Source: Octopus bimaculoides (lineage: Eukaryota). From it: a stretch of 45,489 nt of DNA. The notes under the pieces were generated by a model. It saw only the letters and a list, made by a program, of their open reading frames with translations, ran no database searches and was not told the origin of the DNA. Positions 3,846-30,869 of this stretch are shown here, piece after piece. Location of the stretch: assembly GCF_001194135.2 (NCBI RefSeq), contig NC_068985.1:77183472-77228960 (forward strand). The letters run 5' to 3'. How positions within the stretch are numbered: position 1 is the stretch's first letter; each line of letters begins with the position of its first letter. Both the position numbers and the translations under genes were made by a program.

Positions 3846-3865
3846 TTCTTTTTTTTTATTTACAG
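3846..3865 (+). promoter_or_regulatory. Splice acceptor 19 nt upstream of the gene 1 ATG
   Basis: Polypyrimidine tract plus TTTACAG|ACAAC. The same motif and spacing occur in the paralog. Confidence 0.7.
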
Positions 3866-3884: not shown

Positions 3885-6128
3885 ATGAAGATGACAATAG
3901 CAACCAATTCTCTTATTGTTTCAATCACATTTATTATATCACTGACACCACTAAATATAGATACAACAGAAGTCGGAAATAGTTGTGAAATAAAAATTTC
4001 CCCCAATGTCAGCAAGAGTTTAAACCGTTTAGTAAAATCAGGCAAAAAGGTTTTCAATTTTAAAGTTCATATATCTGATAAAAATTTCGATGATTTTCTG
4101 AATCCTGTACCTCTAGATCATTATGCAAATGCTAGGCATTTCACGTGGATTCCAGATGAAAAAGATGGTCTCATAGCGTATAAGAATTTCTTCTATGACT
4201 TTTCACTCCACACATTTAATTTATTAGATGTCTACATCGCTACTCTAAGTATTGATATCGATATAAATTGTGGAAAACAAAATATTCAGAGACACGGTGT
4301 AATAAATTTAATTTTTAAGGAATTGAAGAGAGTCGTATTTATCGATAAATTGCAAATGGGAGATTCCGGATACATGTGTTTTCTTATAAATTTATCCCAG
4401 GACATGAATAAGACGAACAAACACGCGTTAGAAGCTTATAGAAGACTGGGTATGAATCGAGAGATATTGAAGAACTATTGCTGTGAACTGCATAAAAATG
4501 AAAGCCATGTTTATCATTCACAATCCATTTGTTCTGGACATACCATTGAAAATAGCATGTATGTCAATTATGAAAATATTGTTGGAGCAGTTTTGTGGGC
4601 TATATTGCCATTAATTATCAGTTTTGTATCAAAAGCTAAATTACCTTCATATTCCCGCGAACTTAACCAACAACAATTAACTCACGATGGATCCTCATTT
4701 AAAATTATGTACACATTACCATACAAATCAGAATGGGTCAATGGAAAACATAGTACTTACAGTTTCTCTCATTTTCTATCTTGGTTGTTTTGTTTTCACC
4801 ATTCCACTTTCTTTGCTTCAAGAGTAAGAAGATTCATTTTTATTATGTTTCCTCTTTCAATAATTTTCCTGGATCTTTTAATGCATTATTTATTTTTATA
4901 TGAAACGATGACAATACTTTTACATGATCGTATTCCATTGGGTTATCGCGCCATAATTCTAGGAATCTCTGAAAGCTTTGAAAATACAGATGGTTTTTTC
5001 GGGGGTCCCTTTGTTTGGTTTATCATCTATATATTTTTCAACTTTATTCTCTTCGTTCTTCCCAGTCGTTTAAGTGAGACTATCGCTTATAGTACATTAC
5101 ATCAAAGGTCTACTTGCACTTTTCTTATTCAGAATATTAGATTAATAGAGAACTATGGAAATTTGAATAGGTTTGAACTTGAAGATTACGATCTACTTTA
5201 TGCAATAATGAGAGCCAATGTTTCTACTGCTTTAAACCCAAATTTCTGGTATTTAATAATTTATACTTGGATTAAACGCATAAAGAAAATTTGGTTTTAT
5301 TACTACGAGAGAAATATTTTTAGCCAATTCATATTACTTTGGTTATTTATAACGATTACGATTTTATTTGCTGTATTTTCTATCTGCGAATTACTTCTGT
5401 GCCTCGTTTATTACGGAATCCCAATCGTTTATTTGATTCTAACTTTACCATTAAGTTACTTCAAAGTCTATATTTTACCAATGTATTTGAATCCTAACCA
5501 TATTTCCAAGATTATTGCTTTTATTTTAACATTCGTTTCGTTGCCCTTTTATGTATTATGGTATTTAGATTCGATTTATATTTTTCTTACAACTTTCCAA
5601 GTTCTTTGCAACTATTCATTTTCAATAGCTATTGCTGTAATTGCTAAACCTGATACTGTTGGTGATATATGGTTTGTTGCCATGTTTTTCGTTTACGGTT
5701 TTGCAATTACGAAAGCTATTCATAAAAAGTATCGTACTATACTAGTTAAAAGTATAAAGTTAACCAGAACTGTTCGCTCAGATTTAGTTCAATCAAAATA
5801 TGGAGAGAAATTCATAAGTGTTAAGTTGTTTAAAACAATTATTAACCAACATTTTCCTTTGAGATACGAGATTAGTACATCCATTGTAAAACTGTTCCTA
5901 ATCGTATCTTTTTTCTTTGCTTGCAATAACATAATAAACCGAAATGATTTGGATCTATCAGCATTCAAAAAAATCACGTTGATTTTGATGACGTCTCTGA
6001 TGCCTAAGTTATTGTCAATAATTAATACTAAATTTCGTGTTGATATATCCCTGTCACATAAAATTATCGGAACAATTAATGCATTCGAAGAAGTAAATAC
6101 TTCACAGACAAGTTTATCAATTTATTAA
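3885..6128 (+). CDS. Uncharacterised multi-pass membrane protein, paralog 1 (747 aa; signal peptide, ectodomain of about 200 aa, about 8-10 hydrophobic segments)
   Basis: Uninterrupted 2.2-kb ORF, co-linear with 16984-19197. The start GCCATG follows a splice acceptor and precedes a hydrophobic leader. N-x-S/T sequons and Cys residues lie in the N-terminal domain. Confidence 0.9.
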   Translation: MKMTIATNSLIVSITFIISLTPLNIDTTEVGNSCEIKISPNVSKSLNRLVKSGKKVFNFKVHISDKNFDDFLNPVPLDHYANARHFTWIPDEKDGLIAYKNFFYDFSLHTFNLLDVYIATLSIDIDINCGKQNIQRHGVINLIFKELKRVVFIDKLQMGDSGYMCFLINLSQDMNKTNKHALEAYRRLGMNREILKNYCCELHKNESHVYHSQSICSGHTIENSMYVNYENIVGAVLWAILPLIISFVSKAKLPSYSRELNQQQLTHDGSSFKIMYTLPYKSEWVNGKHSTYSFSHFLSWLFCFHHSTFFASRVRRFIFIMFPLSIIFLDLLMHYLFLYETMTILLHDRIPLGYRAIILGISESFENTDGFFGGPFVWFIIYIFFNFILFVLPSRLSETIAYSTLHQRSTCTFLIQNIRLIENYGNLNRFELEDYDLLYAIMRANVSTALNPNFWYLIIYTWIKRIKKIWFYYYERNIFSQFILLWLFITITILFAVFSICELLLCLVYYGIPIVYLILTLPLSYFKVYILPMYLNPNHISKIIAFILTFVSLPFYVLWYLDSIYIFLTTFQVLCNYSFSIAIAVIAKPDTVGDIWFVAMFFVYGFAITKAIHKKYRTILVKSIKLTRTVRSDLVQSKYGEKFISVKLFKTIINQHFPLRYEISTSIVKLFLIVSFFFACNNIINRNDLDLSAFKKITLILMTSLMPKLLSIINTKFRVDISLSHKIIGTINAFEEVNTSQTSLSIY

Positions 6129-6140
6129 TATTCTCTGAAA

Positions 6141-6146
6141 AATAAA
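6141..6146 (+). terminator. Candidate polyadenylation signal AATAAA
   Basis: 13 nt after the gene 1 stop. AT-rich DNA makes chance matches common. Confidence 0.35.
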
Positions 6147-6211
6147 ACTATTCATATATTCTAGAAATTATTCTATCGTTTTTAACTACTTTTGCACTGA
6201 CAGAAGCACAA

Positions 6212-6377
6212 AATACACACACACAGACCCACACATATTATAGATGTGTATGTGTGTGTATGTATGTATGTATGTGTGTGACTATATGCACGTAATAATA
6301 CATATGTGAATATGTGCGTGCGTGTGTGAATGTGTGTAGTATGTGTGTGTGTTTGCGTGAGAGTGTGTCTGTGTTTG

Positions 6378-6413
<36 letters not shown>

Positions 6414-6416
6414 TGC
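6212..6416. repeat. Compound (CA)/(GT)/(GTAT) microsatellite
   Basis: Direct reading. Confidence 0.9.
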
Positions 6417-6539
6417 ATAAAAGATTATTGTAATTTACTTAAAACAGTGCAATATGCTTAAATGAGATATATGCTTAAAAGAAAGAACTTTCAAGAAATG
6501 CAAGTGAGAATTTAAGTAAGATATGAAAGGTAATATTGG

Positions 6540-6746
6540 TTTCAAATTTTGGTGGAAGTCCAGCAAGATTGGAGGAAGGGGAGTAAGTTGATTGAATCGA
6601 CCCCAGTGTTCAGTTGGTACTTATTATATCAACCCCGAGAGGATGAAAAGGAAAGTCGACAGCAGCAGAATTTGAAATCAGCACGTGAAGACGAATGAAA
6701 TACCACTAAGCATTTTGTCCGGCGTGCTAACGATCCTGTCAGCCCG
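6540..6746 (-). mobile_element. tRNA-derived SINE, same family as 24145-24338
   Basis: Shares ATCGACCCC...GGTACTTA...AAAGTCGAC...GAATTTGAA...CTAAGCATTT..CCGG.GTGCTAACG with 24145-24338. A degenerate B box lies on the minus strand. Confidence 0.75.
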
Positions 6747-7486
6747 TTGTCTTTATGTATGGTGATATTTTAACAATTGAAAACAGAAAGAACATAACAG
6801 TTTCTTACAAACATTTTTTAATGACCCTGTAAATTTTAGGGAGTAATTTCCACTTTTCAAATAAAAGAAGAAAAAGGAGTGGCTATCGACAGGCCATTCT
6901 AGTATGTTATGACGAAAGACATTGCTATGATTACCATTTTATGTGCGTGCATACGAACGCATTAATATTTTCAACAAAAGAATTGACAGTGACTTCAAAG
7001 TTTCGGCGTTATCAGACTATGGTTTACTATGACCTTTCTACATTTATGTATCGCTTTTGGCAGAGTGTTTCTTTGGTAGGTGGCGTGCACTAAATGAAAA
7101 TTAAGTACAGCGTACCGAGACAAGAGAAATGACTACAGGAAGCGGGGATGAAGAAAGACAGGAGGAAAATATATGTTTGTTGAGTGTGGGTCGAAAGAAA
7201 GGGATGGTGGGTGTAGTTTCTTATGGTTGAATAAATAAAGTTTGCTATTGTTTCGCTTCACTCAGGCACGTATGTAGCAGAGCAAAACTTTTATAGAGGT
7301 TTATGTGGTTTATAGGGGTTTATGTGTCATAATCAAGTTACATTTCGTGTTGGCTGCAGTTTTAGTTTTTAACTAAAAGGGGTGAATTGCATTACCTATT
7401 TAAATCCTTCTAGAAGCAAAAAGATAATGGTTGAGCTGTTGGCGAATGACATTGACAGATTTAACGGCTCATCAAATTCAATTCTT

Positions 7487-7903
7487 TTATTCTTTTACTT
7501 GTTGCAGTCATTTGACTGCGGCCATGCTGGAGCACCGCCTTTAGTCGAACAAATCGACTGCAGGATTTATTCTTTGTAAACCTGGGTTTATTCTTTGTAA
7601 GCCTAGTGTTTATTCTATCGGTCTGTTTTGCCAAACCACTAAGTGTCAGGGACGTAAACACACCAACATCGGTTGTCAAGCTATGGTGGTGGTGGTGGTG
7701 GTGAGGAAGCAAACACAAACACACACAAATATATTCATAAATATATACGACAGGTTTCTTTCAGTTTCCGTCTACCAAATCCGCTCACAAGGCTTTGATC
7801 GGCTCGAGGCTATAGTAGAAGACACTTGCCCAAGATGCCTAGCAGTGGAACTGAACCCGAAACCATGTGGTTGGGAAGCAAGCTTCTTACCAGACAGCCA
7901 CGC
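7487..7903 (-). mobile_element. tRNA-derived SINE with internal microsatellite, family shared with 8741-9143
   Basis: Minus-strand tRNA-like head (GCGTGGCTGTCTGGTAAG...GGGTTCAGTTCC). The body CAGTCATTTGACTGCGGCCATGCTGGAGCACCGCCTTTAGTCGA recurs at about 8758 and, in related form, at about 29130. Confidence 0.85.
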
Positions 7904-8740
7904 TTGCGCCTATATCTATATTTTCTTGTACAAGATAATATATATCAGGTGACTAACATGTTCAAAGCAGTCACACAAAGTCTACTAACTGTATTACTGG
8001 ATCATGGTCGAAAATTTTTCTGATCTGAGAGGGATTACGTACCGTTACGGTAACCAATACAGTTACAACCAGCCTCAGCTAAAAGTCGACAAGTAGACTT
8101 GTCTTCTCGATAACATGTCTGAAATGGTGTCCCAATGAACCATTGATCCTAAACGGGGTAAGATCTATTTCAAGGAGTGAAGGAATGTTTTAGACATGGT
8201 TGCCAACATTTTCAGCGATTTGGGCTCGAAACAAAAACAACACCAATAATATAGTAAACTTAAAGTCGCCATCTCTTTGTGAATGCATTGTATCGAACTT
8301 AAAAAAAAAAAAAAAATCGGCGTGAATGAAGCTGCAGTTTCTGGTGAAAGTTTTCTGTCCGGTAGATGCTCTGCGGTAAAACGGCGTAGATTCAGTCATC
8401 GTCATGTTGAGGCTTGAAGAAAAGTATGCTAAGTATTGTGCTTCAAGAATGAAAAACTTCTTCCTCGCTTAAAATTGTGAAAAAGATAGGGTAAAGTCAC
8501 ACAAGAACCAACAAATCAAACCCAAATGGATGAATTAGTAGAACGCAAATATTGTGGCTAATCAGGAGAATACAACGCTCGCCAAGAATGTGTAAGCTAG
8601 AGGAAAGGGAATTTGATGTGGAAAATCTTAACGATCAACTGGAGATCCATAAAATCTGAGGAAGAAACTGAAGGAAACTGAGGCCCTGGAGTCAGAAAAT
8701 TTGTGATTAGTAGATCGAACCAATACTTTCTTTCTCTCTT

Positions 8741-8925
8741 TACTCTTTTATTTGTTTCAGTCATTTGACTGCGGCCATGCTGGAGCACCGCCTTTAGTCG
8801 AGCAAATCGACCCTGGGACTTATTCTCTGTAAGCCTAGTACTAATTCTATCGGTCTCTTTTTGCCAAACCTCTAGCATCGGTTGTCAAGCAACGCTAGGG
8901 GGGGGGNNNNNNNNNNNNNNNNNNN

Positions 8926-8985
<60 letters not shown>

Positions 8986-9143
8986 GAGGTGTTTCTTTCA
9001 GTTTCCGTCTAGCAAATCCACTCACAAGGCTTTGGTCGGCCCGAGGCTATAGTAGAAGACACTTGTCCAAGTTGCCATGCAGTGGGACTGAACCCGAAAC
9101 TATGTGGTTGGTAAGCAAGCTACTTAACACACAGCCACTCCTG
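8741..9143 (-). mobile_element. tRNA-derived SINE with internal (CA)n
   Basis: Co-linear with 7487-7903. Confidence 0.85.
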
Positions 9144-9329
9144 CACCTGTTTGAAATATTGAAATACCATTAAAATTGAACAATGGTATTGATAAGACTA
9201 TCTGCAGAAAGAATAAAGATACCGATACATAAGTATTAGCAGGTGTTAATTTATTTGAGGAAATCCGGTGGAAAAAGAAAGGACAGACAAAACAACTTTA
9301 GCGGAAACCTTTGTAGAAACCTTTGTGAC

Positions 9330-10400
9330 AAACGTGGATACTAATCATTTTGAGCAGTCGTAGGAAAAATATAAAGATCTCAATCGACGGTGGAATCCAG
9401 ATAAATTAAGGACAGGGAGAAAGGTAGATAAGAGGTAAGAGAAAATTTGGAATCGAACATTTTCTATGATGGAGATGAAGTAGGTAAAGTTCATAAAAAT
9501 ACTAAAATAGATCTATCTAATGAGGAGAATATAAAATGACTAAATGTTGAAATAACATACATATATCTGAGAATATTGGAAACTGATAAAATGAGAAATA
9601 TAAAATTGAAAGATGCCCGCACTAAAGCTTATTTGAAAATCCAAATTGAATGCAGAAAACATCGTACAAAAATTCTACTCGAGGGTAGTATCGTAAATAA
9701 AGTATGGAGTAAAAATTATTGAGTTGAAGAAAGGTATATCAACAAGAAAATGAATTAGCATTTCACAATGTACAGAAACATGCATCCCCAATCAGATGTA
9801 CAGCGGTTACAGAAAGAGAGTTAATGATTATCGAAGCTGTGACAGAACTAGAGAAAGCAAGTCAAGGTTTCTATCAAGAAGGAAAAGAAATTATATTATG
9901 CAGGTAGTAAATGAAGCGCTACTTACAGAGTCTGAAAAAGGAAAACAGGAATATATAGAAAATGAGAAAATAAATTTTAAAACAAAGAGACTTCATTCAG
10001 TGATAATTCAAAAAATCCATATAGACAAAGACAGCTGGCTCTGGCTAATGATGTTAAAGAAAGAAGTATTCAGGAAAGATACTGTGAGTATGGTTTCAAT
10101 TGAGTAGGTACATGTCCAAAGGAATATTTAGATCTCGAGAATGAGAGATTAAGAGGAATACTCATACAAATATAGAATGTGTGATGATTCAGATGAAATC
10201 TTAATTAATATTGTATCAGAATATCTACAATCAGTTTAGAAAGAATAGAAAAAAGGTAATCATAATAAGATTGCAGCAATCATCCATTGAGATATTTGAA
10301 AGAAACTTGGTTTTTGCATGCAAAGAGAAATGACTATTTTAGGGGAATAGAAATATGGGAAAATAGAAATATGGAACTGAAAAGAATGGGGTGAGGTTGT
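9330..10400 (+). mobile_element. Highly decayed R4/Dong-like non-LTR retrotransposon fragment
   Basis: Residual peptides TYIYLRILETDKM, KRLHSVIIQKIHIDKDSWLWL and HNKIAAIIH parallel the better-preserved element at 26112-28525 (YKYLGILEMDK, KRMYGQFHR...RWLWM, RHDNIARLVHW). Confidence 0.55.
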
Positions 10401-10689
10401 TATGAGACTTTCCTAAAGAAACGATATATTGCAATTAATGTGTTATGTCTATTTGATATCAAATAAAAGAAAAAAGAACAGAAAAAGCAAAAGAAAAGCG
10501 CATTACATGGACTTCAAGTGCTACTGTACTCTGTCTCCAAATACAGAAGTCTATTTCTCATCAGGCAGTGAAGTAGCTTTGTTGGTGTTTCGGTCTCTTT
10601 TATCGCGAAATCAGACCTGCTCGGGTCCACCCACCGATTTAAGCGATAAAACGCCCGTACAACACCACGGGCTTTGTTGAATCAGACAT

Positions 10690-12690
10690 TATGGCTCTAG
10701 GCCAGATGTTTCTATCGTTCTCAGTGCTCGTTCTTGCTGCACCACTCGTCATCGGTCTTAAACCAAACTTGCTTTCTTAGTGGCTTTTGACGATTTTCTG
10801 ACATCTTTTCTTTACTTCGCGAATAATCTAAGGTTTTTGAGCATCAAGTGAAACAAATCTTCTAACACCTAAGTCTACAGAAGACATATTGCCTCCAATA
10901 GTTCATTTTCTCAGAGTTCAACTAACTTACTTATTTCTTGTCTTTCCTGAGGAAAGTGTCTTCGATGTTCACTTCTCAGAGAACTATCTGTTCTATATTT
11001 TTTCCATTTTCATTTCCTTGATGGCAAAAGGTGGAAAGTGATATATACCAACAGAATCTACATAAACCTTTCAAGTACCCTTCCATTTTGGATCATGCTT
11101 CTTCTTTACAGTAGCTGGCTTGCAACGTTCACCTTTCCTTCAAAATTTTGTCTTCCTATGCTCCTCTACTTTTGGTCTTCATCGTTGTTAATTCACATTA
11201 CCCACCTCCGATACTTCGTCAGCCAGTAATCTAAGTGCTTAGTAATGCTGTCATGTATATCTGTGCTCCAACTCTAGTGTACAGTTGGACAGAGAGCGCT
11301 TCATCGCTCCAACCTGTCCAACTTTACACAGACCACTCGCTTTTATTTTCCAACGGAAGTTTGCAGGACTAGGAAGAATGCCGAAGACGGGGCGAATTAG
11401 AAAACTGATTCTGGCTGGTTCCCATGACCGCGGTACACTATTCCTGTTGGTTACATTGTACCAACTCAACGCAGCAGCTTTTTGACTGTTCTTTCTTTAC
11501 CTGGTTGGCTACTGCAATCCTTCTCTGCTTCTCGTTCATAGCATGATTTTCAAAGCCTTATCTATTAGTACGTGTGTGGCTCATTATATCCCTATACTTT
11601 AAGGAGTCCACAAACTTCTCCGTTGCATCCGAAGCTATCCACTTTTTCTAGTCCTTATCTCTCTCTCTAGAAGAAAGGATTGGATGACAAAGTCATTTGA
11701 ATGGTGCAGCATCAGTACCGTCCGCACCATATCACATTTGCACTGCTCAACTATTGATGAAATGTGTGTCTCTAATTGCCCTCTATTCCTTTACAAATAC
11801 GTGTTTGCAAGGGCCCATGACATATTTCCAAGTGGGATCGCAAATACCCACTTGCAAATATAGACGTTACGTTTTCATTTTGTTGTAGTATCCTGTGTCA
11901 ATGCAACTTGATAGAATACCAGTGACCACTGCAGTCTGGGGTACAGAGCAAATTGCGAACATCAGAGTTTGAACTTGTTTGGTTGTAATGTTTTATCGAT
12001 AATTCACAGTAATTTTCTGGATTTTGGATACATTAACCCCTATCATTAAGCGGTCCACAATAATGTCCCCTCAGGCTCTTCACAGGCTCCGCTGCTATTG
12101 TTGGTATGACTTTTCCTGTAATCTCATTCTTCACTTATTTCTGTCTCTCCTTGATGAGTGCTGCACTCCGTAACTTTGTTTTAAAACTCATTCTTGTTCA
12201 GCTTATCAGCTCATCCAGTTTTCTCGGTATTCTCACCACTGACTTATCCTTCAAGCCAACAAAGCTACATCATCCTTGAAAACTTTTTTTTATAGAAGTA
12301 GGTTATTCCTTCCATGGACATGGGCCACTCTGCCTCGTTTCTTCCAAGACGTTGAATAGTCCTTTGTGGTAAATCGCATGTATAACTTGCCTTAGTAGTC
12401 TATCCTTAGTTTGCAGACTTCTGGTGAAACCCAGAAGGAGCTCCATGTCATGCTCAAGCAGTTTGTGTCGAACTGATCTAAAATCAGTTGCCAGATTAAG
12501 TCACACAAATGCTAGGTTGTTTTACAGTCTCTTCACTGTCTGCATAGCATCCTAGATCTATGCAACCTAGTACACCTGGGATTCCAGCTTTCTGTACTGC
12601 ACAATCAATATAGCCATTATCTACCAAATATGCCATAGCCCATCTAACAACAACGGCAAGCAATATTTTCCCATTTACATTTTGCTGGGA
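10690..12690 (-). mobile_element. Decayed R2-superfamily non-LTR retrotransposon, Hero-like
   Basis: Minus-strand peptides in the expected order: AVQKAGIPGVLGCI, NLAFV*LNLATDFRSVRHKL, RKLDELIS*TRMSFK, IPTIAAEPVKSL, KFKL*CSQFALYPRLQWSL, RKKWIASDA, EPARISFLIRPVFGILPSPAN. Many stops and frameshifts. Clade assigned from recalled motifs. Confidence 0.7.
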
Positions 12691-12762
12691 ACTTAGCTTA
12701 AACTGGTTAAGAGTTGAGGAGTTCTGCTCTTTGGGAAGGTAGATACATTGTTACTGTTTAAC

Positions 12763-12767
12763 GACAC

Positions 12768-12843
<76 letters not shown>
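12763..12843. repeat. (CA)n microsatellite running into a gap
   Basis: Direct reading. Confidence 0.95.
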
Positions 12844-13559
12844 NNNNNNNNNNNNNNNNNNNNNNNNNNNNNNNNNNNNNNNNNNNNNNNNNNNNNNNNN
12901 NNNNNNNNNNNNNNNNNNNNNNNNNNNNNNNNNNNNNNNNNNNNNNNNNNNNNNNNNNNNNNNNNNNNNNNNNNNNNNNNNNNNNNNNNNNNNNNNNNNN
13001 NNNNNNNNNNNNNNNNNNNNNNNNNNNNNNNNNNNNNNNNNNNNNNNNNNNNNNNNNNNNNNNNNNNNNNNNNNNNNNNNNNNNNNNNNNNNNNNNNNNN
13101 NNNNNNNNNNNNNNNNNNNNNNNNNNNNNNNGAAAAAAGCAAATAAAACGAAGCTATGGAAATTAAATACGCTTTACACCGCTTAATCAGCCAAAGGAGT
13201 AAATGTAAACAACTGAATACTTGTCAGTGATTGGTTGAAATTATCGAAATAAGACAATTTTTTACATGAAATAAATTCGAATACAAAAATATTTTTCTGT
13301 TCTATAACACAAAATAGATAAGTATACGAAGTTTGAAAGTCTTTCGGTACCAAAAACACTACGTAAAACATTAATGAAAAATGTGGCCCCCGTTTTAAAA
13401 AAGATCCGAATAAAGTTATATTCTCATTCTAACTAGGCCAAGTTGATATATGTAAATAAACTAAGAAAGATATTTAAAAGCTTGGACGAGGATGTTATAT
13501 CGAAATACAGATTTATAGTTATATAATGCTATTAGGGCATATTGATTAACAGAGATAAG

Positions 13560-13750
13560 TAAACATCTTGAAAGACTGATTTCCACAGAATGTTGACTTT
13601 GCTGTTTATTAATAAGATTCGTACTCTCACATAATGTTTCAAGGAACTCTCTGCTACACATATTGCATGCAATCGGCTACATCGGTAAGATCCTCTAATA
13701 ATAGATCGGATTATATAAAAATTGTTATTCGCCTTGAATTGAGGGATATA
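13560..13750 (-). mobile_element. Penelope-like element relic, C-terminal GIY-YIG region
   Basis: Minus-strand CNMCSREFLETLCESTNLINKQ resembles the Penelope C-terminal CxLCxxEK...NLLNKR motif. Confidence 0.4.
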
Positions 13751-14419
13751 ATTTACAAACAAAGTGAAAGGTTTGCGCGTAATAGAAAATTTATATAGCA
13801 CATCTATATTCGACATTATATCGCATGGAATCACCACCCAAGGACAGATTGTTAAGTATTCTACATTTACATTTATTTATATCACGTGGAAAAATGCCAT
13901 TAACACTAATAATTTTGTTACTATTATTCATATTGTTCTCGATTCTATCAATATTGCTGTCAAACATACCAATACAATCATTATTACTGTTATTATTCTT
14001 ATAATTGTTATGAACATCAATACAATTATCTTTGATATATTTACAATTAGGAATGTTAATATTATTTTATTACTGCACTTAAAATAGTTATCATAGTTAC
14101 AGATGTTTTTGTTCTTACGTAATATTATAATAGCAATTATTCTGATATATCTTACATGTGAGAAAACACAATATGTACTTCATCAGTTACGCTGGGGGAA
14201 AGAAGAGTAGAACAACAAACGAAGTGAGAGTGGGTGACAGTCAGAGACGCTAAAAATAGGCCAGCTAAATTCAAATACGTTGCTCTGAAGACGCTTGTTA
14301 TTTTAACCAAAATAAAATTGTAAATTTTTATCGTAAATTGTACTTATCAGTTTATCAGTTTCACACACACATACACATACATACACACACACAGACATAT
14401 ATATACACACACCCTTCTC

Positions 14420-14590
14420 ACTAATCGTTAAGAACTTAGCTAAATCAGTCTTTAATATACTGGACACCAACTTCCCTCGTCAACATAAATATTACCCTAT
14501 CTTTAATAGATCTACCATGAAGCTATCCTATTCCACCCCACCGAACTTCGAGTCTATCATAGTAGCCTCTAATAAACAAAAGCTTTCTTT
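14420..14590 (+). mobile_element. Penelope-like element relic, RT-endonuclease linker
   Basis: KNLAKSVFNILDTNFPRQHKYYPIFNRSTMKLSYSTPPNFESII matches the Penelope pattern F..LIDKHFP..H.L..IFNRNT.K.SYS..PN...II. Confidence 0.65.
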
Positions 14591-15084
14591 CTACTATCAA
14601 AACTCACACTATAACAACTGTGAATACACGAGCCCCCAACATATACACAGCTCCAGCATTGAACACCATACGTTAGATCACAACCATAACCCAACCTATC
14701 CTACTAACACTATCTAGAATACTACCACAATTGCCATCACCGTTACAGATAGAGTAATTAACAACAACTATAGTAATAATAACGATAATAGTAATAACAA
14801 TACTAATAACTTTCTTCCCTCATCTCTAACCTCTCCTCTGACATTATTACCTCCTCTATTCCTGAAAATAATCCACAAAATACACTCACTTGTAATTGCC
14901 GTCCTGGGTCCATCTGCCCTCTACAAACCCATCTATTTTTTATTTATTATTTCTTCTTGCGTTATTTTTCTTGCGTTATTTCTTCTTATTCCTTATGTTT
15001 GACGGATTATGTTGTATTTCTTATATATGTTCATTGAGGGAGTGTGATTTGTTGAGTCGTTAACCCAGTCTTTTTATTCTATAA

Positions 15085-15087
<3 letters not shown>

Positions 15088-15175
<88 letters not shown>
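15088..15175. repeat. (TA)n(TG)n microsatellite
   Basis: Direct reading. Confidence 0.95.
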
Positions 15176-16944
15176 NNNNNNNNNNNNNNNNNNNNNNNNN
15201 NNNNNNNNNNNNNNNNNNNNNNNNNNNNNNNNNNNNNNNNNNNNNNNNNNNNNNNNNNNNNNNNNNNNNNNNNNNNNNNNNNNNNNNNNNNNNNNNNNNN
15301 NNNNNNNNNNNNNNNNNNNNNNNNNNNNNNNNNNNNNNNNNNNNNNNNNNNNNNNNNNNNNNNNNNNNNNNNNNNNNNNNNNNNNNNNNNNNNNNNNNNN
15401 NNNNNNNNNNNNNNNNNNNNNNNNNNNNNNNNNNNNNNNNNNNNNNNNNNNNNNNNNNNNNNNNNNNNNNNNNNNNNNNNNNNNNNNNNNNNNNNNNNNN
15501 NNNNNNNNNNNNNNNNNNNNNNNNNNNNNNNNNNNNNNNNNNNNNNNNNNNNNNNNNNNNNNNNNNNNNNNNNNNNNNNNNNNNNNNNNNNNNNNNNNNN
15601 NNNNNNNNNAGGTTAGCTGAGTTAGAGGTTAAAATAACCGTCTAAAGAATAGAAGTATCCACTATACTACCGGTATATTACCTATGTTTAACCATGGGCA
15701 TAAATCATAGGTAAAAACAATGATAAACATGAGTTTATCAAGAATCAAAATTTAAAGAAAACAGAAAATTGAGAAATATTGATGAACAATTGTATGTATG
15801 TATGTATGTATGTATGTATGTATGTATCTATCTATCTATCTATCTATTTATCTATCTCAGAGTCATTCATCCACTCTATCTATATATCTATCCAACTGTG
15901 TACCCATCCATATATTCATCTCTTTATCACTCTCTACTTGATATAAATTTTCGCCTAAATGTTCTCGTTTATGAAAAATAGTTTCTTCCTTCCCTTCTTC
16001 TCTTCTTCAACTTATTTGCTAGAGTACGCATTTGTGTTACTGTTTTTTATTTTATTGTTGTTGCTGTTGTATTTATGATTATGGTTACGAGTAGATATTT
16101 TGTAGTGCTACTCATCAACCATATCAACAACAATAAATACACACACACACATACACATAGAGGCATACACACTCTCACACTTGCGCGGGGACGACACCAT
16201 CCTAACGTCTGAAATATAAACGCAGATTAAATCTTTAGAGAGAAGGTAGCCGCATAAAAATTTACCTGCTCTTCCTATCAATCACTAATTTACAATGAGA
16301 AAATTTTATTACTCAAAAGACATTTTTTGCACTTCACTGATTTTTAGGTTAAAATATCTAGTTTCTTAATCTTTGTTCTCAGGTTTTTGTTACTATTACC
16401 AAGGCTCCAAGAAAAACCGCCTGTATCACAATACTCTGTCTGCAGTACTCTAGGATATCACACTTCAGGTTGGTGTAACATTCTATATTATACTTTTTCC
16501 ATTTGATTTCAAAATTCCGTGTTAGATGAGAATGCATAGTTTCTTCGACGACTAAGATATCTATCCTGTTCTGTTCTGTTCTGTTCTTTCAATTCTTTTA
16601 TAGAAAAGTCTCACAAGCTCGCTTCATTGTTTACAAGGACTAGCGGTTCTATTCCCTGTCCTCCATGTCTTGGACCCTTTGGTCAATAAAAGAAATTATT
16701 ATTATTGTTAACAGAGTTGTGTTTATTTTCGATAATTATCGAAGTTTTGCTGACGTCGGTCAATGAATTTCATGTGGAGCAGTTAAGTATCATCGGTTTG
16801 TGTTTATATGTCTTTAGTGAAGTTATCACCACAGTTTGAAAGATACTTCTTCTACTTAAAAAAACCTTCTAATAACAAGAAACCGGCTGTAGAAATATTC
16901 TCCGTTTCAAATGAAACTGAAATGAAACCTTTTTGCTATGTATG

Positions 16945-16964
16945 TTCTATTTTCTTATTTACAG
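16945..16964 (+). promoter_or_regulatory. Splice acceptor 19 nt upstream of the gene 2 ATG
   Basis: TTCTATTTTCTTATTTACAG|ACAAC, homologous to 3846-3870. Confidence 0.7.
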
Positions 16965-16983
16965 ACAACTTAATATTGCTGCC

Positions 16984-19197
16984 ATGCAGATAACAACAAC
17001 AACAACCAGTCTTCTTATTCTTTCAATCACCATTATTACCACATTGGCATCGCTAAAAGTAGATGCGAAAGAACTCGGACATAATTGTACAACTACAATT
17101 TCTCCCAATGTCAGCAAGAGTTTAAATCGTTTAGTAAAATCAGGCAGAAAGGTTTTCAATTTTGAAGTCCATGTATCTGATAAAAGACTTGATGATTTTC
17201 TGAAGCCTGTACCACTGAATTATTTTGCAAATGCTAGGCATTTCTCGTGGATTCCAAATAAACCTGACGGTTTAAATGCGTATAAAAATGTTCCCTATGA
17301 CTTTCCACTTTACTCTCTTAATTTATTAGATGCGTATATCGCTACTCCAAGCATCAATATCGATATAAATTGTGCAAAACAAAATATTCGTAGATACGAT
17401 GTAATACATTTGATTTTCGAGGAACTGAAGAGAATTGTATTTACCGATGAATTACAAATGGGAGAATCTGGATACATGTGTTTTTTTATCAGTTTGTTAC
17501 ACGAAGTGAAGAAGAACAGTCCTTATGCGTTTCTAGCTTACAGAAGATTGGGTATGAATCGAAAGATACTGAAGAACTACTGCTGTGAATTACATAAAAA
17601 TGAAAGCTATGTTTATCAAGCGAAATCCATTTGTTCTGGAAATATCATTGATAACAGTTCATTTAATAATTATGCAAATATCGTCGGAGCAATTTTGTGG
17701 GCATTTTCCCCATTGTTTATTCGTTTTACATCAAAAGCTGAAATACCTTCATATTCCCATCAGTTCAATCTAGTCCAATTTGCTCACGATGAATTTTTAT
17801 TTAGAATTAAATACACGTTACCAAACAAATCAGAATGGATTAATGAAAAACATAGTATTTACAGTTTCTCTCATTTTGTATCTTGGTTATTTTGTTTTCA
17901 CCATTCCACGTTCTTTGCTTCAAGATTAAGAAGATTCATTCTTATTCTGTTTTCTCTTTCAGTTATTTTCTTGTGTATTTTAATGCATTATTTTTTTTTA
18001 TATGAAACGGTGACAATACTTGTACAAGATCGTATTCCATTGGGTTATCGTGCCTTAATACTAGGAATCTCAGAAAGCTATGAAAATACAGATGGTTTTC
18101 TCGGGGGTCCCTTAGTTTGTGTTATTGGCTACATATTTTTAAGCTGCATTGTCTTCATTCTTCCCAGTCGGTTAAGTGAGACTATCGCTTATAGTACATT
18201 ACATCAAAGATCCACTTGTACGTTTCTAATTCAAAATATCAAATTATTAAACAACTATGGGAATTTAAATGTTTCTACACTTCAAAATTATGATCTACTT
18301 TATGCAATAATGAAAGCTAACATTTCTACTGCTTTAAATCCAAATTTCTGGTGTTTAATAATATATACTTGGATTAAACGTTTACAAAAAATTTGGTTTT
18401 ATTACTACGAGAGAAATATTTTTAGCCAATTCATATTACTTTGGATCTATATTGCGATTACAATTTTATTTGCTGTATTTTCTATCTGTGAACTACTTCT
18501 GTGCCTCGTTTATTACGGAATTCCAACTGTTTATTTGATTTTTACATTACCATTAAGTTACTTCAAAGTATATATTTTCCCTCTGTATGTAAAAAATAAT
18601 TATTTTTTCATGATTATTGCTGTAATTGTATCGTTTTTATCATTTCCATTTTTTACATTATGGGTACTTTATTCAAGCTACGTGTTTCTAATGAGTTTTC
18701 AAATCATTTGTAGATATATATTTTCAATAGCTATCGCAATGCTTGCTAAACCTGATGCTGTTGGTGATGTATGGTTTGTTGCCATGTTTTTCTTCTACGG
18801 GTCTGCTGTTATGAGTACTATTCTGAAACAGTACCACACTATCCTGCTTGAAACTATAAAGTTAACCAAAACTCTTCGTCCAAGTTTAGTTCAGTCAAAA
18901 TATGGAGAGGAATTCATTAATGCCAAACTGTTCAAAGTAATCGTTAACAATCATTATCCTTTGAGACACGAGATTGGTAAATCCATTGTAAAACTATTTC
19001 TGGTCGTATCTTTTTTCTTTGCTTGTAACAATATAATAAGTCAACACGACTTGGATCTATCAGCATCCACAAAGATTGCATTATTGTTGATGACGACTAT
19101 GATACCAAAATCATTATCGATAATCAATACTAAATTTCATTTTGATATATTCCTGTCAAGTGAAATTATTGACACAATTAATGTATTTGAAGAATGA
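16984..19197 (+). CDS. Uncharacterised multi-pass membrane protein, paralog 2 (737 aa)
   Basis: Uninterrupted ORF, roughly two-thirds identical by eye to paralog 1. It has invariant blocks (ISPNVSKSLNRLVKSG, ILKNYCCELHKNES, LPSRLSETIAYSTLHQRSTCTFLIQNI, KIWFYYYERNIFSQFILLW) and runs of synonymous differences. Confidence 0.9.
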   Translation: MQITTTTTSLLILSITIITTLASLKVDAKELGHNCTTTISPNVSKSLNRLVKSGRKVFNFEVHVSDKRLDDFLKPVPLNYFANARHFSWIPNKPDGLNAYKNVPYDFPLYSLNLLDAYIATPSINIDINCAKQNIRRYDVIHLIFEELKRIVFTDELQMGESGYMCFFISLLHEVKKNSPYAFLAYRRLGMNRKILKNYCCELHKNESYVYQAKSICSGNIIDNSSFNNYANIVGAILWAFSPLFIRFTSKAEIPSYSHQFNLVQFAHDEFLFRIKYTLPNKSEWINEKHSIYSFSHFVSWLFCFHHSTFFASRLRRFILILFSLSVIFLCILMHYFFLYETVTILVQDRIPLGYRALILGISESYENTDGFLGGPLVCVIGYIFLSCIVFILPSRLSETIAYSTLHQRSTCTFLIQNIKLLNNYGNLNVSTLQNYDLLYAIMKANISTALNPNFWCLIIYTWIKRLQKIWFYYYERNIFSQFILLWIYIAITILFAVFSICELLLCLVYYGIPTVYLIFTLPLSYFKVYIFPLYVKNNYFFMIIAVIVSFLSFPFFTLWVLYSSYVFLMSFQIICRYIFSIAIAMLAKPDAVGDVWFVAMFFFYGSAVMSTILKQYHTILLETIKLTKTLRPSLVQSKYGEEFINAKLFKVIVNNHYPLRHEIGKSIVKLFLVVSFFFACNNIISQHDLDLSASTKIALLLMTTMIPKSLSIINTKFHFDIFLSSEIIDTINVFEE

Positions 19198-19299
19198 AAT
19201 ATATCGAAGAGCAGTTTATAAAATTTTTAGCTTCGCCTAAAAAATCCCTTATAAGAATCTTTAACTATTTTAATAAGTAAAACTAGTGCAGACACCGGA

Positions 19300-19929: not shown

Positions 19930-22900
19930 TACGATGGGCGGATAGTAGCTCTTTAGTCTTGAATGACAAGCTGTCTAGGAGAAGGATACTCCGAAATTAA
20001 ACCTTAAGTCTCAATGAACATCCATTGATGAGGATCTATTCCTTTTTATGGGTTATGCTTTTGGTACTTAGAGAGTGGGATTTGGTGAGTGCAAGCTCTC
20101 TCCTTACTTCAAAAAGTTTCTGGCATCGGTATTGCTTTAGCAAATTTTGCTTAAGTTATACGAGCTCAGTAAATGGGGCTGGTTGTAGCCCGAAAAAATG
20201 GCTTAAATGCAATTATGAGATCCATAAGCTATGAAAATGTAAATGACAAAAAGGGCTTGGGATCCAGAGATGAACAGGTCTGGCCCAGCAGGTGCCCCAG
20301 TGTACCGCGGCCTGGGCTCGGTCGTCGTTCTGCCCCTGCGTTTAGCAACAGCAACAGACAAGTTTCCATGAATATTGGATGCTGAAATGTAAGAACATTA
20401 TTAGATTCAAAATCAAATTAAAGATACCCAGAGAGAAAGTCTGCTCTTATTGGTATGGTGATGCAAAAGTATGCAATAGACATTGTAGTATTATCAGAGG
20501 CTAGATTGCTTGGGAAAGGTAACTTTACTGAGAAATCCAGTGGCTACACATTTTATTGGAGTGAGAAAGAAGAAAAAGAAAATTACAAAAAAGTAAGTTG
20601 CGTTGCTTTTGCTCTGAAAACCTCCTTGGTTGATAAGTTAGAGGAATTGCCATGTTGCCCTCAAGAAAAGGTAGGTATGTAACACTTGTTAGTGTTTATG
20701 CACCAACTATGAATGCAAGTGAAAATGAAAAGCTTTCCTTTTATGATGTGCTGAAAGAAAATACCCGCAAAATTCCACACAAGGATGCGATAATCATACT
20801 GGGCGATTCTAATGCTAGAATTGGTAAAGATCATGAGATATGGGGTGTGATTGGAAGACACGGGGTGGGAAATTGTAACAACAATGGCTTACTTTTGTTA
20901 CAGATGTTTTCTGAGCTAAATCTATTTATTAGGAGCAGTGCTTTTCAGCAAAAAGATAAATTCAAAACTAGATGGAAGCACCCCGGTTCAAAACAATGGC
21001 ACCTGATAGACTGTATGATAACTAGAAAGCGAGATAAGGAGAATTTATGTATAATCTGGGTTATGCGAGGAGCAGAATGTTGGACAGATCATCGCTTGGT
21101 TCGTGGGAAGATCAAGTTTAAAGTGAAACCAAAAAGTAGACAAAGTGGCACTGGCATCTCTAAACATCTGAATGGGAATTTCCTTAAGGATAAAACAGTT
21201 AGAGTAGAATTTCATCAGAAGATCAAAAATTTGGATTGGCCAGATGAGTGGATGGACTTCAGAGGACAACTATACAATTTAAGTAAAGAAGCTTTAAGAA
21301 GAAAGAAGAAAAAACATCAAGATTGGTTTGATGAAAGTGATGGAAATATTCAACATATGTTGGAAGGAAAAAGAAAGGCATTGCATTCATTACTAGCAAA
21401 TAATTCTGATCAAAATAGAGCTTTTTTTCAAAGAGATAAAAGCAGATGTGCAAAGAAAGATTTGAAGCATGCAGGTGGCAGAAGAAAGCAGAAGAGATAG
21501 AGGCTGCTTCCAATGTTAAGAACACTAAGTTATTATATACTCTCCTTCATGAGGTGTATGGGCCATCATTTCCTACTTTGGCTCATGTGAAGAATAGTAA
21601 TGGTGTTTTATCGAGGGAGCCCAAAGACATCTTAAAACGATGGGAGAAACATTTCAATGAACTTCTGAATCGACCATCAGTTGTTGATGAAAAAAGTATT
21701 GATATGATTCCACAGAATGCACCTATTGAGTGCTTAAATGACACTCCGTCAGTGGAGGAAACAATACAAGCAGTACCAAAGCTGAACAATGGCAAAGCAC
21801 CGGAAGTTGATAGCTTGAATATAGAACTATTTGAGTTTGGGAGGTGGGGTATTACTTGCTAGAAATGCTGACAGCAGTAATATAAAAGATATGGAAAAAT
21901 GAAGTTATGTCAAAAGACTGGAAGGATGCAGTCATGGAAGTTGTGTTCAGGGGTAAGGGACAAAAGGATGGATGCCATAACTTTCGTGGTATTTGCCTGC
22001 TTGCTACAACCGGCAAAGTTTTATCACGAATAATGTTGGACCGGCTGCAGATGTATATAGCAAATGAGATTCTTCTTGAATCACAGAGTGGATTCAGAAA
22101 TGATAGGGTACTGTTGACATGATCCTCTCTGCACGGCAGTTACTGGAAAAGTGTATGGAACAGAACTTCATCAAGTATTCATTGATCTTACTAAGATTTT
22201 TGACTCTGTCAGTCGAACTGCCTTGTGGGAGATCTTGAGGAGACTTGGAGATAAGTCTTAAAGCAGTTTCATGATGGCATGGAAGTAAGGATCAACATTG
22301 GTGGAAAGCTCTCGGAGCCCATCTCTGTCATGAATGGAGTAAAACAAGGTGACATACTAGCACCCACTCTCTTCACCCTATATTTTACTATAGTTTTTCA
22401 GTTGGCTTTCAAAGGGTCCTATAAAAGCATATATATATATATATATATATATCAGATATCGCACAACAGGAAAAATCTTTAACATCAAAAGACTGTCAGC
22501 TAAGTCAAGGACGTCTTCAACTCTTATTAGAGACCTCCTCTATGCATATTGTGATATTGTCACTGATACTGAAGATGACAAGAAAAATCTTATGAATGCA
22601 ATTTCAAAGGCTTGTGAGGCACTTGGCTGAACCATAAAAATAACCAAAACTGTTGTCATGTTTCAGCCAGCACCAGGAATGCCATACATAGAACCTGGTA
22701 TCTTCGTGTATGGAAGAAAACTTGCTGCGGTTTCTAAGTTTGTTTACTTAGGGAGCACACTAAACACATCAACAAATCTTGATGATTAAGTGTCACTACG
22801 CATTCAGAAAGCCGGTTTTGCTTTTGGCAAACTGGAAGACCGCCTACGGTCTAGACATGGTATTTCCACTACGACAAAGATTTAGGTATACAATACATGT

Positions 22901-26111: not shown

Positions 26112-28525
26112 AACCCTTGCACAGCTTCTACCGCTGGAGATGTACTACAGTGTCAGCTGTTCACTACCAATGAACTAAGGTAACACCTTTTATTTTTCGA
26201 GCACCTTCCGGAGTATTCGAGCGGTTCCAAGCAGTGCTGTTTTCTGAAGTGCTCCACCTTTATTGCAGCCCCTATTTGTTCCACGTACTTCTCGAGATTT
26301 TTGCTCACTGTTCCCAGGGCTCCAACAATTATTGATAATACTGCTACCTTTTTCATCGGCCACAACTACTTAACTACCCAAGCTAACCTGTCATATCTCT
26401 CAACTTTTCTTTCTTCCTTATCGCATACCTTTTTTTTAGCTGGGCATGCTATATCTATGATCCAGCATAATTTATTTTCTTTCTCAATTAAGACTATGTC
26501 TGGCTTCCTATTCTCTATCTCATGATCGCACTGAATCATAAAATCCCATAGTATCTTTCATATCTATTTCCGAAGATGCCTTCAGGTTTGTGGTCGTACC
26601 AATTTTTTGCTCTGTCAAGTCCATACTTGTTGCAAAGTGTCCAATGAACAAGCCTAGCTATATTGTCGTGGCGTCTCTTATATTCCTCCTAGGCTAGTGG
26701 CGTACATTGGCTGGTAATATGCCATACGGTTTCGCCATTTTGTCTACAGGTTCTGCATTTATCACTTTCTGCTGTGTTGTCTATTCTGTATTTTATGTAG
26801 TTTGTTCTTAGTGCTGGCTCTTGGGCAGCACAAATTAGAGCCCCCGTTTCCGGTTTTAAATCACTTTTAGTCATCCACAGCCATCTTTTTTCTCCGTCTG
26901 TCTTATTTTCAACATCCCTATGAAATTGACCATACATTCTTTTCTTTACCCACCTATTTTCTGTTTCATTAGTTTTCAATTTCTTGTATATTGTTTATCT
27001 TTGCAATCTTTCATCCTACCCGAGCCTGACCTTCTTATTCTAATAATAGCGGTTCTGTGGCATTTTTTACATACCATGCTATGTTGTTTTCTTCTGCTCT
27101 AATGCTGTGTTCGCATCCAATAAGTCTTTTTCCTCCCTCTTTTTCTTGGTACATACAGTCTGTTTGTGTCACTTTTTGGGTGGAGTATCCTATAACTAGT
27201 TAGCAACTTCCTTGTCTTTCTGGCTAAGCTGTTTAGTTCGTCTACTGTCCATGCGATCACCCCTTCTCTATATCTAAGGAATGAAACTGCTCAGGTGTTG
27301 ATAACTTCGATCTTATTCCGTCTGTTTAATTTCGACTTAAGGATTAGTCTCAGTCTGAGGAAGTACCCCACCTTAAATTTTTCTGTGATTTCTTTCTCCA
27401 ATTTATCCATTTCCAAAATCCCCAAGTACTTATAGCCCGTCTCTTCTATCTGCTTCATAACTTCCCCCGACGGTATCGTTAGCCCATCCATACATTTGAT
27501 TTTGCCTCTCTTCAAGACTAACACACCACACTCTCTCAGTCCGAACTCCATTCTGATATCAGTTCTGAAGGTATACTCTGTATCAACGAGAGAACTGACT
27601 TGGGTTTCATCTTTACCATAAAGTTTGAGGTCAACCATGAATAACAAATGGTTGACTTTGTTGGTGGCTTTTGAATACATACCTAGCCTTTGCTTTCCTC
27701 AAAATCAGTGTAAGTGGTATCAAGCACAGTACAAAGATCAGTGGAGACAGGCAGTCCATTTGGAAGATGCCCCTCCTAATTTCTACTGTCCCTAAACTTC
27801 TTCCGTATGCTGTCAGGTCCGTCCTCCAATTCGTCATACTTTTTCCAAGCAATCGCTCGACATTCGATGCAATACCAAAGAGGTTCGTACACTCCATAAT
27901 CCAAGAATGTGGGATCATATCGTACGCCTTACGATAGTCGATCCATGACATGGCTAAGTTAGTTTTCCTCCTCTTGCAGTCTCTGAGTACAGTTTTGTCT
28001 ATCAGGAGTTGATCCTTGGTACCTCTGTACTTACGCTTGCAATCCTTCTGCTCATGTGGCAGGACTCCATTTTTTTCCAGATGTTCGTACATTGACTCTG
28101 CGAGTATTCCAGTCAATAACTTCCACATAAGTGGCAAGCAGGATATCGGCCTGTAATTGTCTACCGTATTGCCTTTTTCGATGTTTTTCAGGCACAGCAC
28201 TGTCCTACCCAATGTCAACCACTCTGGTGTTACTTGGTCTGCATTTAACAAGGTGTTGAGTTGCGCAGCTATTCGTGCATGACGTTCACCAAATCTTTTG
28301 ATCCAGTAGCCTTGAATCCCATCTGGTCCCGGGGCCCTTCAGTTGCTCATTTATTTTGCTGATTTCCTTCACTTCCCAAACTGAAATGACTCGTTCTGCT
28401 TGCTTTGGACAGACTACTGTTTGTTTCAGTTCTTGCAACGATTCAGCATCCTTCTGGTGCTCCTTGTCTTTGCCCCAGATGTCACTCCAAAACCTTTAAC
28501 TTTCAATGCAATCTGGTATCATATA
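26112..28525 (-). mobile_element. 5'-truncated R4/Dong-clade non-LTR retrotransposon (RT, CCHC knuckle, restriction-like endonuclease)
   Basis: [99 protein letters not shown]. The 3' end runs into a TAA tract. Confidence 0.9.
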
Positions 28526-30252: not shown

Positions 30253-30869
30253 CGCACACTTTTTGTTTAATGTTATTACTTGTAAAAAGTTTTATAAGTT
30301 TTCACCTATGCCTCTGGCAGCTGAAATTATAAAGAAACTTTAGAGTAGATTTTATATTTTCTTTTCCTTCTTCTCTCTCTTTTTTTCATTTCACTCGCTT
30401 CTATTGCAAGAGGCGTTCAACCGTTCACTGCTGNNNNNNNNNNNNNNNNNNNNNNNNNNNNNNNNNNNNNNNNNNNNNNNNNNNNNNNNNNNNNNNNNNN
30501 NNNNNNNNNNNNNNNNNNNNNNNNNNNNNNNNNNNNNNNNNNNNNNNNNNNNNNNNNNNNNNNNNNNNNNNNNNNNNNNNNNNNNNNNNNNNNNNNNNNN
30601 NNNNNNNNNNNNNNNNNNNNNNNNNNNNNNNNNNNNNNNNNNNNNNNNNNNNNNNNNNNNNNNNNNNNNNNNNNNNNNNNNNNNNNNNNNNNNNNNNNNN
30701 NNNNNNNNNNNNNNNNNNNNNNNNNNNNNNNNNNNNNNNNNNNNNNNNNNNNNNNNNNNNNNNNNNNNNNNNNNNNNNNNNNNNNNNNNNNNNNNNNNNN
30801 NNNNNNNNNNNNNNNNNNNNNNNNNNNNNNNACTTTTTACAAGTAATAACATTAAACAAAAAGTGTGCG

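Follow-up and report, generated by a model that had tools for sequence, protein, structure and literature searches.

In a 45,489-nt stretch of the Octopus bimaculoides genome (NC_068985.1, positions 77,183,472 to 77,228,960; hereafter the window), two neighbouring genes, A and B, were found to encode members of an undescribed family of multi-pass membrane proteins, which is carried by molluscs and by at least one annelid. We hold this description of the genes and of the family with high confidence. The functional class is put forward much more tentatively, and a cell-surface sensor, channel or transporter is the possibility that we favour at well under even odds. For the reading as a whole, in which description and function are blended, we would give a probability of roughly 45%.

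Two intact genes in tandem

The two coding sequences and the splice signals predicted ahead of them are as follows.

3885-6128, + strand: coding sequence of gene A, a single exon encoding 747 amino acids (aa), with the stop codon at 6126-6128
16984-19197, + strand: coding sequence of gene B, a single exon encoding 737 aa, with the stop codon at 19195-19197
3846-3865, + strand: predicted 3' splice acceptor of gene A, a polypyrimidine tract and then AG at 3864-3865
16944-16964, + strand: predicted 3' splice acceptor of gene B, a polypyrimidine tract and then AG at 16963-16964

The frame of gene A is free of stops from 3825, with the ATG at 3885 as the likely start. Since about 8% of random codons are stops at the local GC content of 30%, a run of 747 codons without a stop would arise by chance with a probability of about 2e-27. 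Assembly GCA_001194135.2 already lists gene A, with 747 aa, on chromosome CM046605.1 near 77.18 Mb, while the product of gene B appeared as protein P0003 among the matches of a word-indexed protein search. When the whole window was searched by tblastn with protein A, only the A and B copies were recovered. Neither frame holds a run of N, so both are continuous sequence, and the dependence on scaffolding is limited to the adjacency of A and B and their spacing of 10.8 kb. An earlier reading made from the letters of the window without database searches (the sequence-only reading) had proposed a tandem pair of intact open reading frames (ORFs) of about 740 aa, and this is what was found, with both frames gap-free on the + strand and separated by a spacer that contains three assembly gaps.

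Proteins A and B are 69-70% identical over their full length, with one single-residue gap. The ratio of nonsynonymous to synonymous substitution rates (dN/dS, Nei-Gojobori) between the two genes is 0.37 at a dS of 0.45, and it lies at 0.27-0.47 over 15 octopus paralogue pairs drawn from A, B and four O. sinensis paralogues, with no stop codon inside any of the six coding sequences compared. Judged from this codon-level pattern, A and B are real genes under purifying selection. Their DNA similarity of 81%, which extends from 3844/16943 to 6127/19229, is restricted to the coding exon and about 40 nt upstream of it. At the 3' end, the stop codon of gene B comes about 10 codons before that of gene A (the last residues are ...NVFEE in B and ...NAFEEVNTSQTSLSIY in A), and the likeness of B to A runs 32 nt beyond the stop of B (19195-19229), suggesting that the very end of the C-terminus is dispensable or free to vary, as in the rest of the family.

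At each of the six octopus loci (A, B and the four from O. sinensis), a polypyrimidine tract and then TTACAG/A, where the slash marks the predicted junction, precede the ATG by 10-20 nt, and a similar motif was seen 45 nt upstream in one more distant relative. Apart from this motif, the intron sequence 5' of the acceptor shows no conservation between paralogues. In O. vulgaris, the gene model P0017 splices upstream exons onto the orthologue of A exactly at the predicted acceptor. The conserved acceptor before the ATG points to a non-coding first exon and an intron in the 5' untranslated region (UTR), and it is therefore very probable, as far as such splice signals can tell, that A and B each consist of one coding exon preceded by a 5'UTR intron. 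The description of the pair as intronless thus stands for the coding sequences and probably fails for the genes as a whole. In the O. sinensis paralogue P0007, a (CTAT)n microsatellite abuts the polypyrimidine tract and acceptor (L005, about 1920-1970).

A family shared by molluscs and an annelid

The word-indexed protein search returned 24 relatives. Matches from O. sinensis, O. bimaculoides, O. vulgaris and Argonauta hians were found at 53-71% identity, the O. vulgaris orthologue of A is 92% identical, and five full-length ENA/Logan relatives (P0020-P0024, including those from ENA ERZ21867824 contig ctg120634l and Logan SRR24189505) were found at 33-36%. Two of the latter, P0020 and P0022, possibly come from one and the same ENA contig. 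Searching the same index with a 44-sequence alignment gave the same 24 cephalopod matches, and an Owenia query returned Owenia paralogues only.

A profile search, which covered 1.84 billion representatives clustered at 50% identity, reached much further. It recovered 160 clusters at E<=1e-3, 69 of them at E<=1e-30, mostly of 750-870 aa and aligned end to end, and the window proteins themselves were retrieved by the family profile at E=0. The named members beyond octopods belong to Mercenaria, Mytilus, Ostrea, Mya, Ruditapes, Sinanodonta, Potamilus, Haliotis and the annelid Owenia fusiformis, and all of them are annotated as "uncharacterized", "hypothetical" or "unnamed". Identity across phyla, as across molluscs, is only 16-20%. 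With mostly full-length relatives in cephalopods, bivalves, Haliotis and Owenia, the two genes cannot be called orphans, as they had been at first.

We defined the family by a 44-member alignment (A2). All of the defining residues are present in both A and B, namely the six Cys, W88, GGP373-375, P393, FW454-455, R465, E502, P513, P589, Y616, P658, R660 and P707. The single-exon coding sequence is also shared, as four O. sinensis genes and those of Mercenaria, Owenia and Ostrea are just long enough for the codons of the protein and 3 further bases.

The arrangement of the window has an independent example in Mercenaria mercenaria, where chromosome CM038760.1 carries a same-strand tandem pair (L008, 974-3499 and 10001-12472) of 841 and 823 aa, 60% identical and 6.5 kb apart in gap-free sequence, both with a single-exon coding sequence. 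In O. sinensis, four genes form a loose cluster on one chromosome, at 205.04, 205.13, 205.34 and 208.61 Mb. In a neighbour-joining tree, which comprised 115 full-length members, the octopod copies form a single clade in which A and B are sisters. Its own sister clade consists of P0020-P0024, which probably come from other cephalopods, perhaps a squid or cuttlefish. The Owenia copies likewise form one clade, while those of Mercenaria fall into distant clades. This pattern indicates both old and recent duplications in the family, and the lineage-specific octopod clade bears out the proposal that the family is lineage-expanded.

The homologue of Ostrea edulis (L010, 9315-13050; L011-L014) is present in ten Logan contigs from separate sequencing runs, each about 3.7 kb long, and the four contigs compared were all colinear with the genome and had nearly the same ends. 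These contigs are suggestive, and only that, of an unspliced mRNA of about 3.7 kb and defined length, with UTRs of about 690 nt.

Signal peptide, ectodomain and membrane domain

The predicted proteins are divided into three parts, which are given here in window coordinates.

3885-3950, + strand: signal peptide of gene A, aa 1-22, with the hydrophobic core SLIVSITFIISLT, predicted from hydropathy
3951-4553, + strand: ectodomain of gene A, aa 23-223, an alpha/beta module
4554-6023, + strand: membrane domain of gene A, aa 224-713, drawn from AlphaFold, hydropathy, positive-inside counts and conservation
16984-19197, + strand: gene B, with a signal peptide at about aa 1-23, an ectodomain at aa 24-224 (17053-17655) and a membrane domain at aa 225-714 (17656-19125)

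The signal peptide is predicted to be cleavable, and nearly every relative begins with a hydrophobic stretch within its first 25 residues or so. The ectodomain of A contains six Cys (34, 129, 165, 199, 200 and 216), two of which form the CC pair C199-C200; all 44 relatives share C34, C165 and C199, and 89-98% of them retain C129, C200 and C216. Three disulfides probably lock the module. Four sequons are found in the ectodomain of A (N41, N169, N175 and N205) and four in that of B. The family mean is about five per ectodomain, compared with 0.3-0.6 per predicted cytoplasmic loop, and this 3-4-fold enrichment per residue across the family suggests that the ectodomain is extracellular or luminal.

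A first AlphaFold run with 14 cephalopod-type sequences reached a predicted local distance difference test score (pLDDT) of 52.7 and was too poor for use. With 44 diverse sequences, the model reached a mean pLDDT of 83 and a predicted template modelling score (pTM) of 0.79, with 314 residues at >=90. It places about nine transmembrane (TM) helices in A, at about 224-249, 318-337, 374-392, 478-511, 513-535, 539-587, 589-610, 663-686 and 693-713. TM1 is followed by a disordered cytoplasmic linker (256-281), and the conserved outer loop between TM2 and TM3 (338-373) holds two short helices. Further on, the model shows a tight TM4-TM5 hairpin (478-535), a TM7 that continues into the cytoplasm as a basic stretch (589-630), a cytoplasmic beta-hairpin (635-645), and then helices 659-686 and 693-713 and a C-terminal helix. 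Two structured cytoplasmic segments are predicted, at 393-477 and 611-662, and the structured cytoplasmic residues amount to about 200.

Hydropathy gives 9-10 hydrophobic segments per protein, and family-wide loop counts put the loops rich in Lys and Arg on the predicted inside, which fits nine helices with the N-terminus out and the C-terminus in. We prefer nine helices because a hairpin within 539-587, which would make ten, would place the loops that are most basic outside. A and B are thus well predicted to be N-glycosylated, disulfide-stabilised, multi-pass proteins of type-I orientation that enter the secretory pathway. In these respects the sequence-only reading was accurate, as it had described a signal peptide, an ectodomain of about 200 aa with sequons and six conserved Cys including a CC pair, and 8-10 hydrophobic segments.

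The conserved residues of the membrane domain are GGP373-375, P393, FW454-455, R465, E502, YYGxP509-513, P589, Y616, P658, R660, K669 and P707. The most strongly conserved positions in the protein are structural ones (Cys, Gly, Pro and Trp), along with E502 towards the outer end of TM4, K669 within TM8, and R465, Y616 and R660 on the cytoplasmic side. Comparison of the ectodomain halves and of helix pairs with hhalign revealed no internal duplication or inverted repeat.

Comparison with known families

According to the comparisons made, the family has no sequence or structural relative in Pfam, NCBIfam, the PDB or BFVD. Pfam-A gave no match for A or B at E<=10 and none for any of the 44 relatives at E<=5, and only sub-threshold noise for 20 further relatives. 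NCBIfam gave no match either, and nothing below E=0.3 was found among the PDB sequences with a single protein and two profiles. When the model of pLDDT 83 was compared with the PDB by Foldseek, the best E-value was 0.53, for the V-ATPase a subunit, followed by TRP channels, MsbA and ClyA, and the top matches had a probability <=0.11 and a TM-score <=0.1; against the viral structures of BFVD the best match was at E=1.2. No published work on the family was found in the literature, also under six of its LOC identifiers. One Pfam match of the consensus hidden Markov model, to FAM176 at E=0.001, was rejected, as it covers only the signal peptide and a K/E-rich stretch. The verdict of the sequence-only reading therefore holds on both counts: the proteins belong to an uncharacterised membrane protein family, and AlphaFold with Foldseek, like Pfam and the PDB, gave no significant match to a G protein-coupled receptor (GPCR), Cys-loop, TRP, transporter or transposable-element family.

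The GPCR profiles (7tm_1, 7tm_2, 7tm_3 and Frizzled) found no match, nine or ten helices are predicted, and GPCR chains appeared in Foldseek only at E of about 4-6. Nor did the profiles of the Cys-loop receptors (Neur_chan_LBD and Neur_chan_memb) match these proteins, for which an alpha/beta ectodomain and about nine helices are predicted. This also separates them from the cephalopod chemotactile receptors, as had been proposed. Like A and B, those receptors are membrane proteins with a glycosylated ectodomain, encoded by single-exon coding sequences in local duplicates. However, they are four-helix Cys-loop proteins of about 400-500 aa with a beta-sandwich, whereas A and B have about 740 aa, about nine helices and an alpha/beta ectodomain, and their family predates cephalopods.

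It has also to be considered whether the family might be a very remote branch of some known superfamily of channels or transporters, TRP/polycystin-like or OSCA/TMEM16-like, with a divergence beyond the reach of HMMER and Foldseek. TRPC1/5, TRPM8 and TRPV1/2/5 are present among the weak Foldseek matches, the short helices between TM2 and TM3 of the model could form a re-entrant loop, and TRP channels and polycystins are likewise multi-pass, the polycystins with a structured, disulfide-bonded extracellular domain. However, those weak matches have E>=0.5, a probability <=0.11 and a TM-score <=0.1, and they are noise; the unrelated V-ATPase a subunit, MsbA and ClyA score equally. The TRP matches themselves lie at E>=0.8 with a probability <=0.05, and over the TRP, polycystin and voltage-gated chains as a whole E is 0.8-7 and the TM-score <=0.09. 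Ion_trans, PKD_channel, RSN1_7TM and Anoctamin found no match in the 44 members at E<=5. In addition, the ectodomain of TRP channels and polycystins lies between S1 and S2, whereas that of A and B is N-terminal, after the signal peptide, and the helix count and cytoplasmic elements differ as well. We regard such a distant kinship as improbable.

By architecture alone, the nearest known families are TM9SF and NRF-6/HGSNAT, and neither is backed by sequence, fold or conserved residues. In about 650-800 aa, the NRF-6/acyltransferase-3 and HGSNAT proteins combine a signal peptide, a luminal domain that contains Cys, and about 10-12 helices, and they show lineage expansions in invertebrates. The combination of a luminal domain with 9-12 helices would agree with a membrane-embedded enzyme, such as an NRF-6/AT3- or HGSNAT-type acyltransferase or a GT-C glycosyltransferase. 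Yet the Acyl_transf_3, NRF, HGSNAT and GT-C profiles found no match and no fold match was seen in the PDB, and the 44-member alignment contains neither the catalytic His nor any other conserved His, Asp or Ser from which a catalytic set might be built, and this speaks against an enzyme. The chance that A and B are enzymes of this kind thus appears slim.

The TM9SF proteins, or nonaspanins, start with a signal peptide and a luminal or extracellular domain of about 200-250 aa, which is followed by nine helices and a cytoplasmic C-terminus. The same layout is predicted for A and B, for which nine or ten helices are possible. The likeness is one of overall architecture and is not accompanied by sequence similarity, as the EMP70 profile matched neither the 44 members nor the family consensus. 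Furthermore, TM9SF is pan-eukaryotic, highly conserved and multi-exon, while the family of A and B is spiralian-restricted, fast-evolving and single-exon, with a mixed alpha/beta ectodomain that contains six Cys.

Possible function at the cell surface

New multi-pass families with a structured ectodomain have repeatedly proved to be receptors, channels or transporters. According to the reading that we favour, the proteins would reach the cell surface or a late secretory compartment, where the ectodomain would act as a binding or sensing module on top of a helical bundle. A stimulus might be passed on through the outer-face loop between TM2 and TM3 (P351...GGP375) and through E502-YYGxP513 at the TM4-TM5 turn. 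Subsequently, either the bundle would open a path for ions, a small solute or a lipid, or the change would be relayed to the cytoplasmic segments (FW454-455, R465, Y616 and P658-R660). Repeated local duplication would have given rise to lineage-specific sets of paralogues. We prefer an environment-facing role over a housekeeping one because of the local duplication, the patchy spread, the low identity across molluscs and the dN/dS of 0.3-0.45, and also because a structured ectodomain, conserved outer-face elements and a cytoplasmic module occur together without residues of a catalytic type. The label "channel-like", which the proteins had been given from the start, is a guess, and the sensory or immune role proposed in the sequence-only reading is unsupported.

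Several observations weigh against the reading that we favour, and those on ectodomain variation, copy number and transcripts also against a sensory or immune role. The ectodomain evolves no faster than the membrane core (dN/dS of about 0.2-0.45 in both), whereas the ectodomain of a fast-diversifying chemoreceptor or immune receptor is usually more variable than its membrane core. The copy number is modest, at about 6-10 per octopus genome among the matches of the word-indexed search, and not in the hundreds. Neither a pore motif nor a selectivity filter nor the inverted-repeat symmetry of a transporter was detected. An exact-match transcript look-up matched gene A only in the genome assembly and gene B nowhere. 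Finally, helix 539-587 is about 49 residues long and hydrophobic throughout, so that the helix count may be 9 or 10, and ten helices would flip the topology of the C-terminal third.

Part of this evidence would suit an early secretory-pathway or organelle membrane protein, such as a cargo receptor, a lipid scramblase or an organelle transporter, in which the N-terminal domain of about 200 aa is luminal. The TM9SF-like architecture, the uniform selection over ectodomain and membrane core and the modest copy number are all in line with such a protein. Housekeeping families, however, are usually near single-copy, conserved and broadly distributed, while this one is only 16-20% identical across molluscs, patchy in its spread (molluscs and Owenia among the named matches) and recurrently duplicated in place. 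Its dN/dS of 0.3-0.45 is high for a core function, and neither EMP70 nor any other Pfam profile matches. We therefore consider an early secretory or organelle role unlikely, and keep to the cell-surface sensor, channel or transporter.

A bolder form of that reading may be formulated, in which the family would represent a new structural class of spiralian surface receptor-channels or transporters, with a fold absent from the PDB and an origin older than the split of molluscs and annelids. It would have been expanded independently in octopods, bivalves and Owenia for environment-facing roles, such as chemo- or mechanosensation and the recognition of pathogens or gametes. This proposal is speculative and, in our estimation, doubtful.

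If the fold and the family are as isolated as they seem, the 160 clusters make up a sizeable piece of "dark" membrane proteome without a name, a Pfam entry or a structural relative. The duplications in octopus, oysters and clams make the family a reasonable candidate for lineage-specific sensory or defence biology, and it is easily testable, as the coding exon can be cloned straight from genomic DNA and a confident AlphaFold model exists. The family merits a Pfam entry, and the gelsolin fusion model of O. vulgaris described below needs correction.

Neighbouring genes and repeats

The 3' end of a gelsolin-domain gene (781-aa product, Pfam Gelsolin) lies at 1-1344 of the window on the + strand, the same as that of gene A and about 2.5 kb 5' of it. 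In O. vulgaris, P0017 (annotated as "cytoplasmic-like", 1010 aa) carries gelsolin in aa 1-641 fused in frame to the orthologue of A, and it skips aa 288-599 of the membrane protein, which suggests an artefact of the gene model. P0017 is probably a chimeric or damaged model; read-through transcripts or a degraded orthologue are less likely.

With gelsolin ending so close upstream, joined in frame at the acceptor in the O. vulgaris model, and with abundant retrotransposon debris in the surroundings, the two ORFs might be something other than independent genes, namely alternative 3' coding exons of gelsolin, transposon- or virus-derived ORFs, or recently dead copies. However, a signal peptide works only at the N-terminus, and nearly all family members begin with one. 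The relatives in Mercenaria, Owenia, Ostrea and O. sinensis stand alone as single-exon genes next to unrelated neighbours. Over all loci, including that of the window, the neighbours vary and are mostly host genes (gelsolin, ankyrin, Arf, cNMP-binding and chitin-binding proteins). No transposon genes are consistently adjacent, no viral structure matches the model, and dN/dS is below 0.5 in all pairs, with no stop codons. Altogether, this makes it very improbable that A and B are not genes of their own.

3' of gene B, two short ORFs were identified, one with an endonuclease fragment of a long interspersed nuclear element (LINE) at 20652-21500 on the + strand (Exo_endo_phos_2, E=8e-6) and one with a reverse-transcriptase fragment at 27631-28251 on the - strand (RVT_1, E=8e-12). 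Short ORFs of this kind fit decayed LINE copies. The heavily decayed transposable elements among which the pair was said to lie are thereby borne out in part, by two fragments of non-LTR (long terminal repeat) retrotransposons on this side of gene B.

The spacer between A and B contains the following assembly gaps.

8907-8925, no strand: assembly gap, followed by an (AC)n microsatellite (8926-8982)
12844-13131, no strand: assembly gap, preceded by an (AC)n microsatellite (12764-12843)
15176-15609, no strand: assembly gap, preceded by (AT)n and (TG)n microsatellites (15088-15175)

All three adjoin perfect (AC)n, (TG)n or (AT)n microsatellites, which are the usual cause of breaks in short-read assemblies. 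Nine N runs are present in the window in all, including those at 1950-2505, 30434-30831, 31695-32555 and 34406-34803, which indicates a short-read scaffold. A further microsatellite is located 3' of gene A, at 6313-6415.

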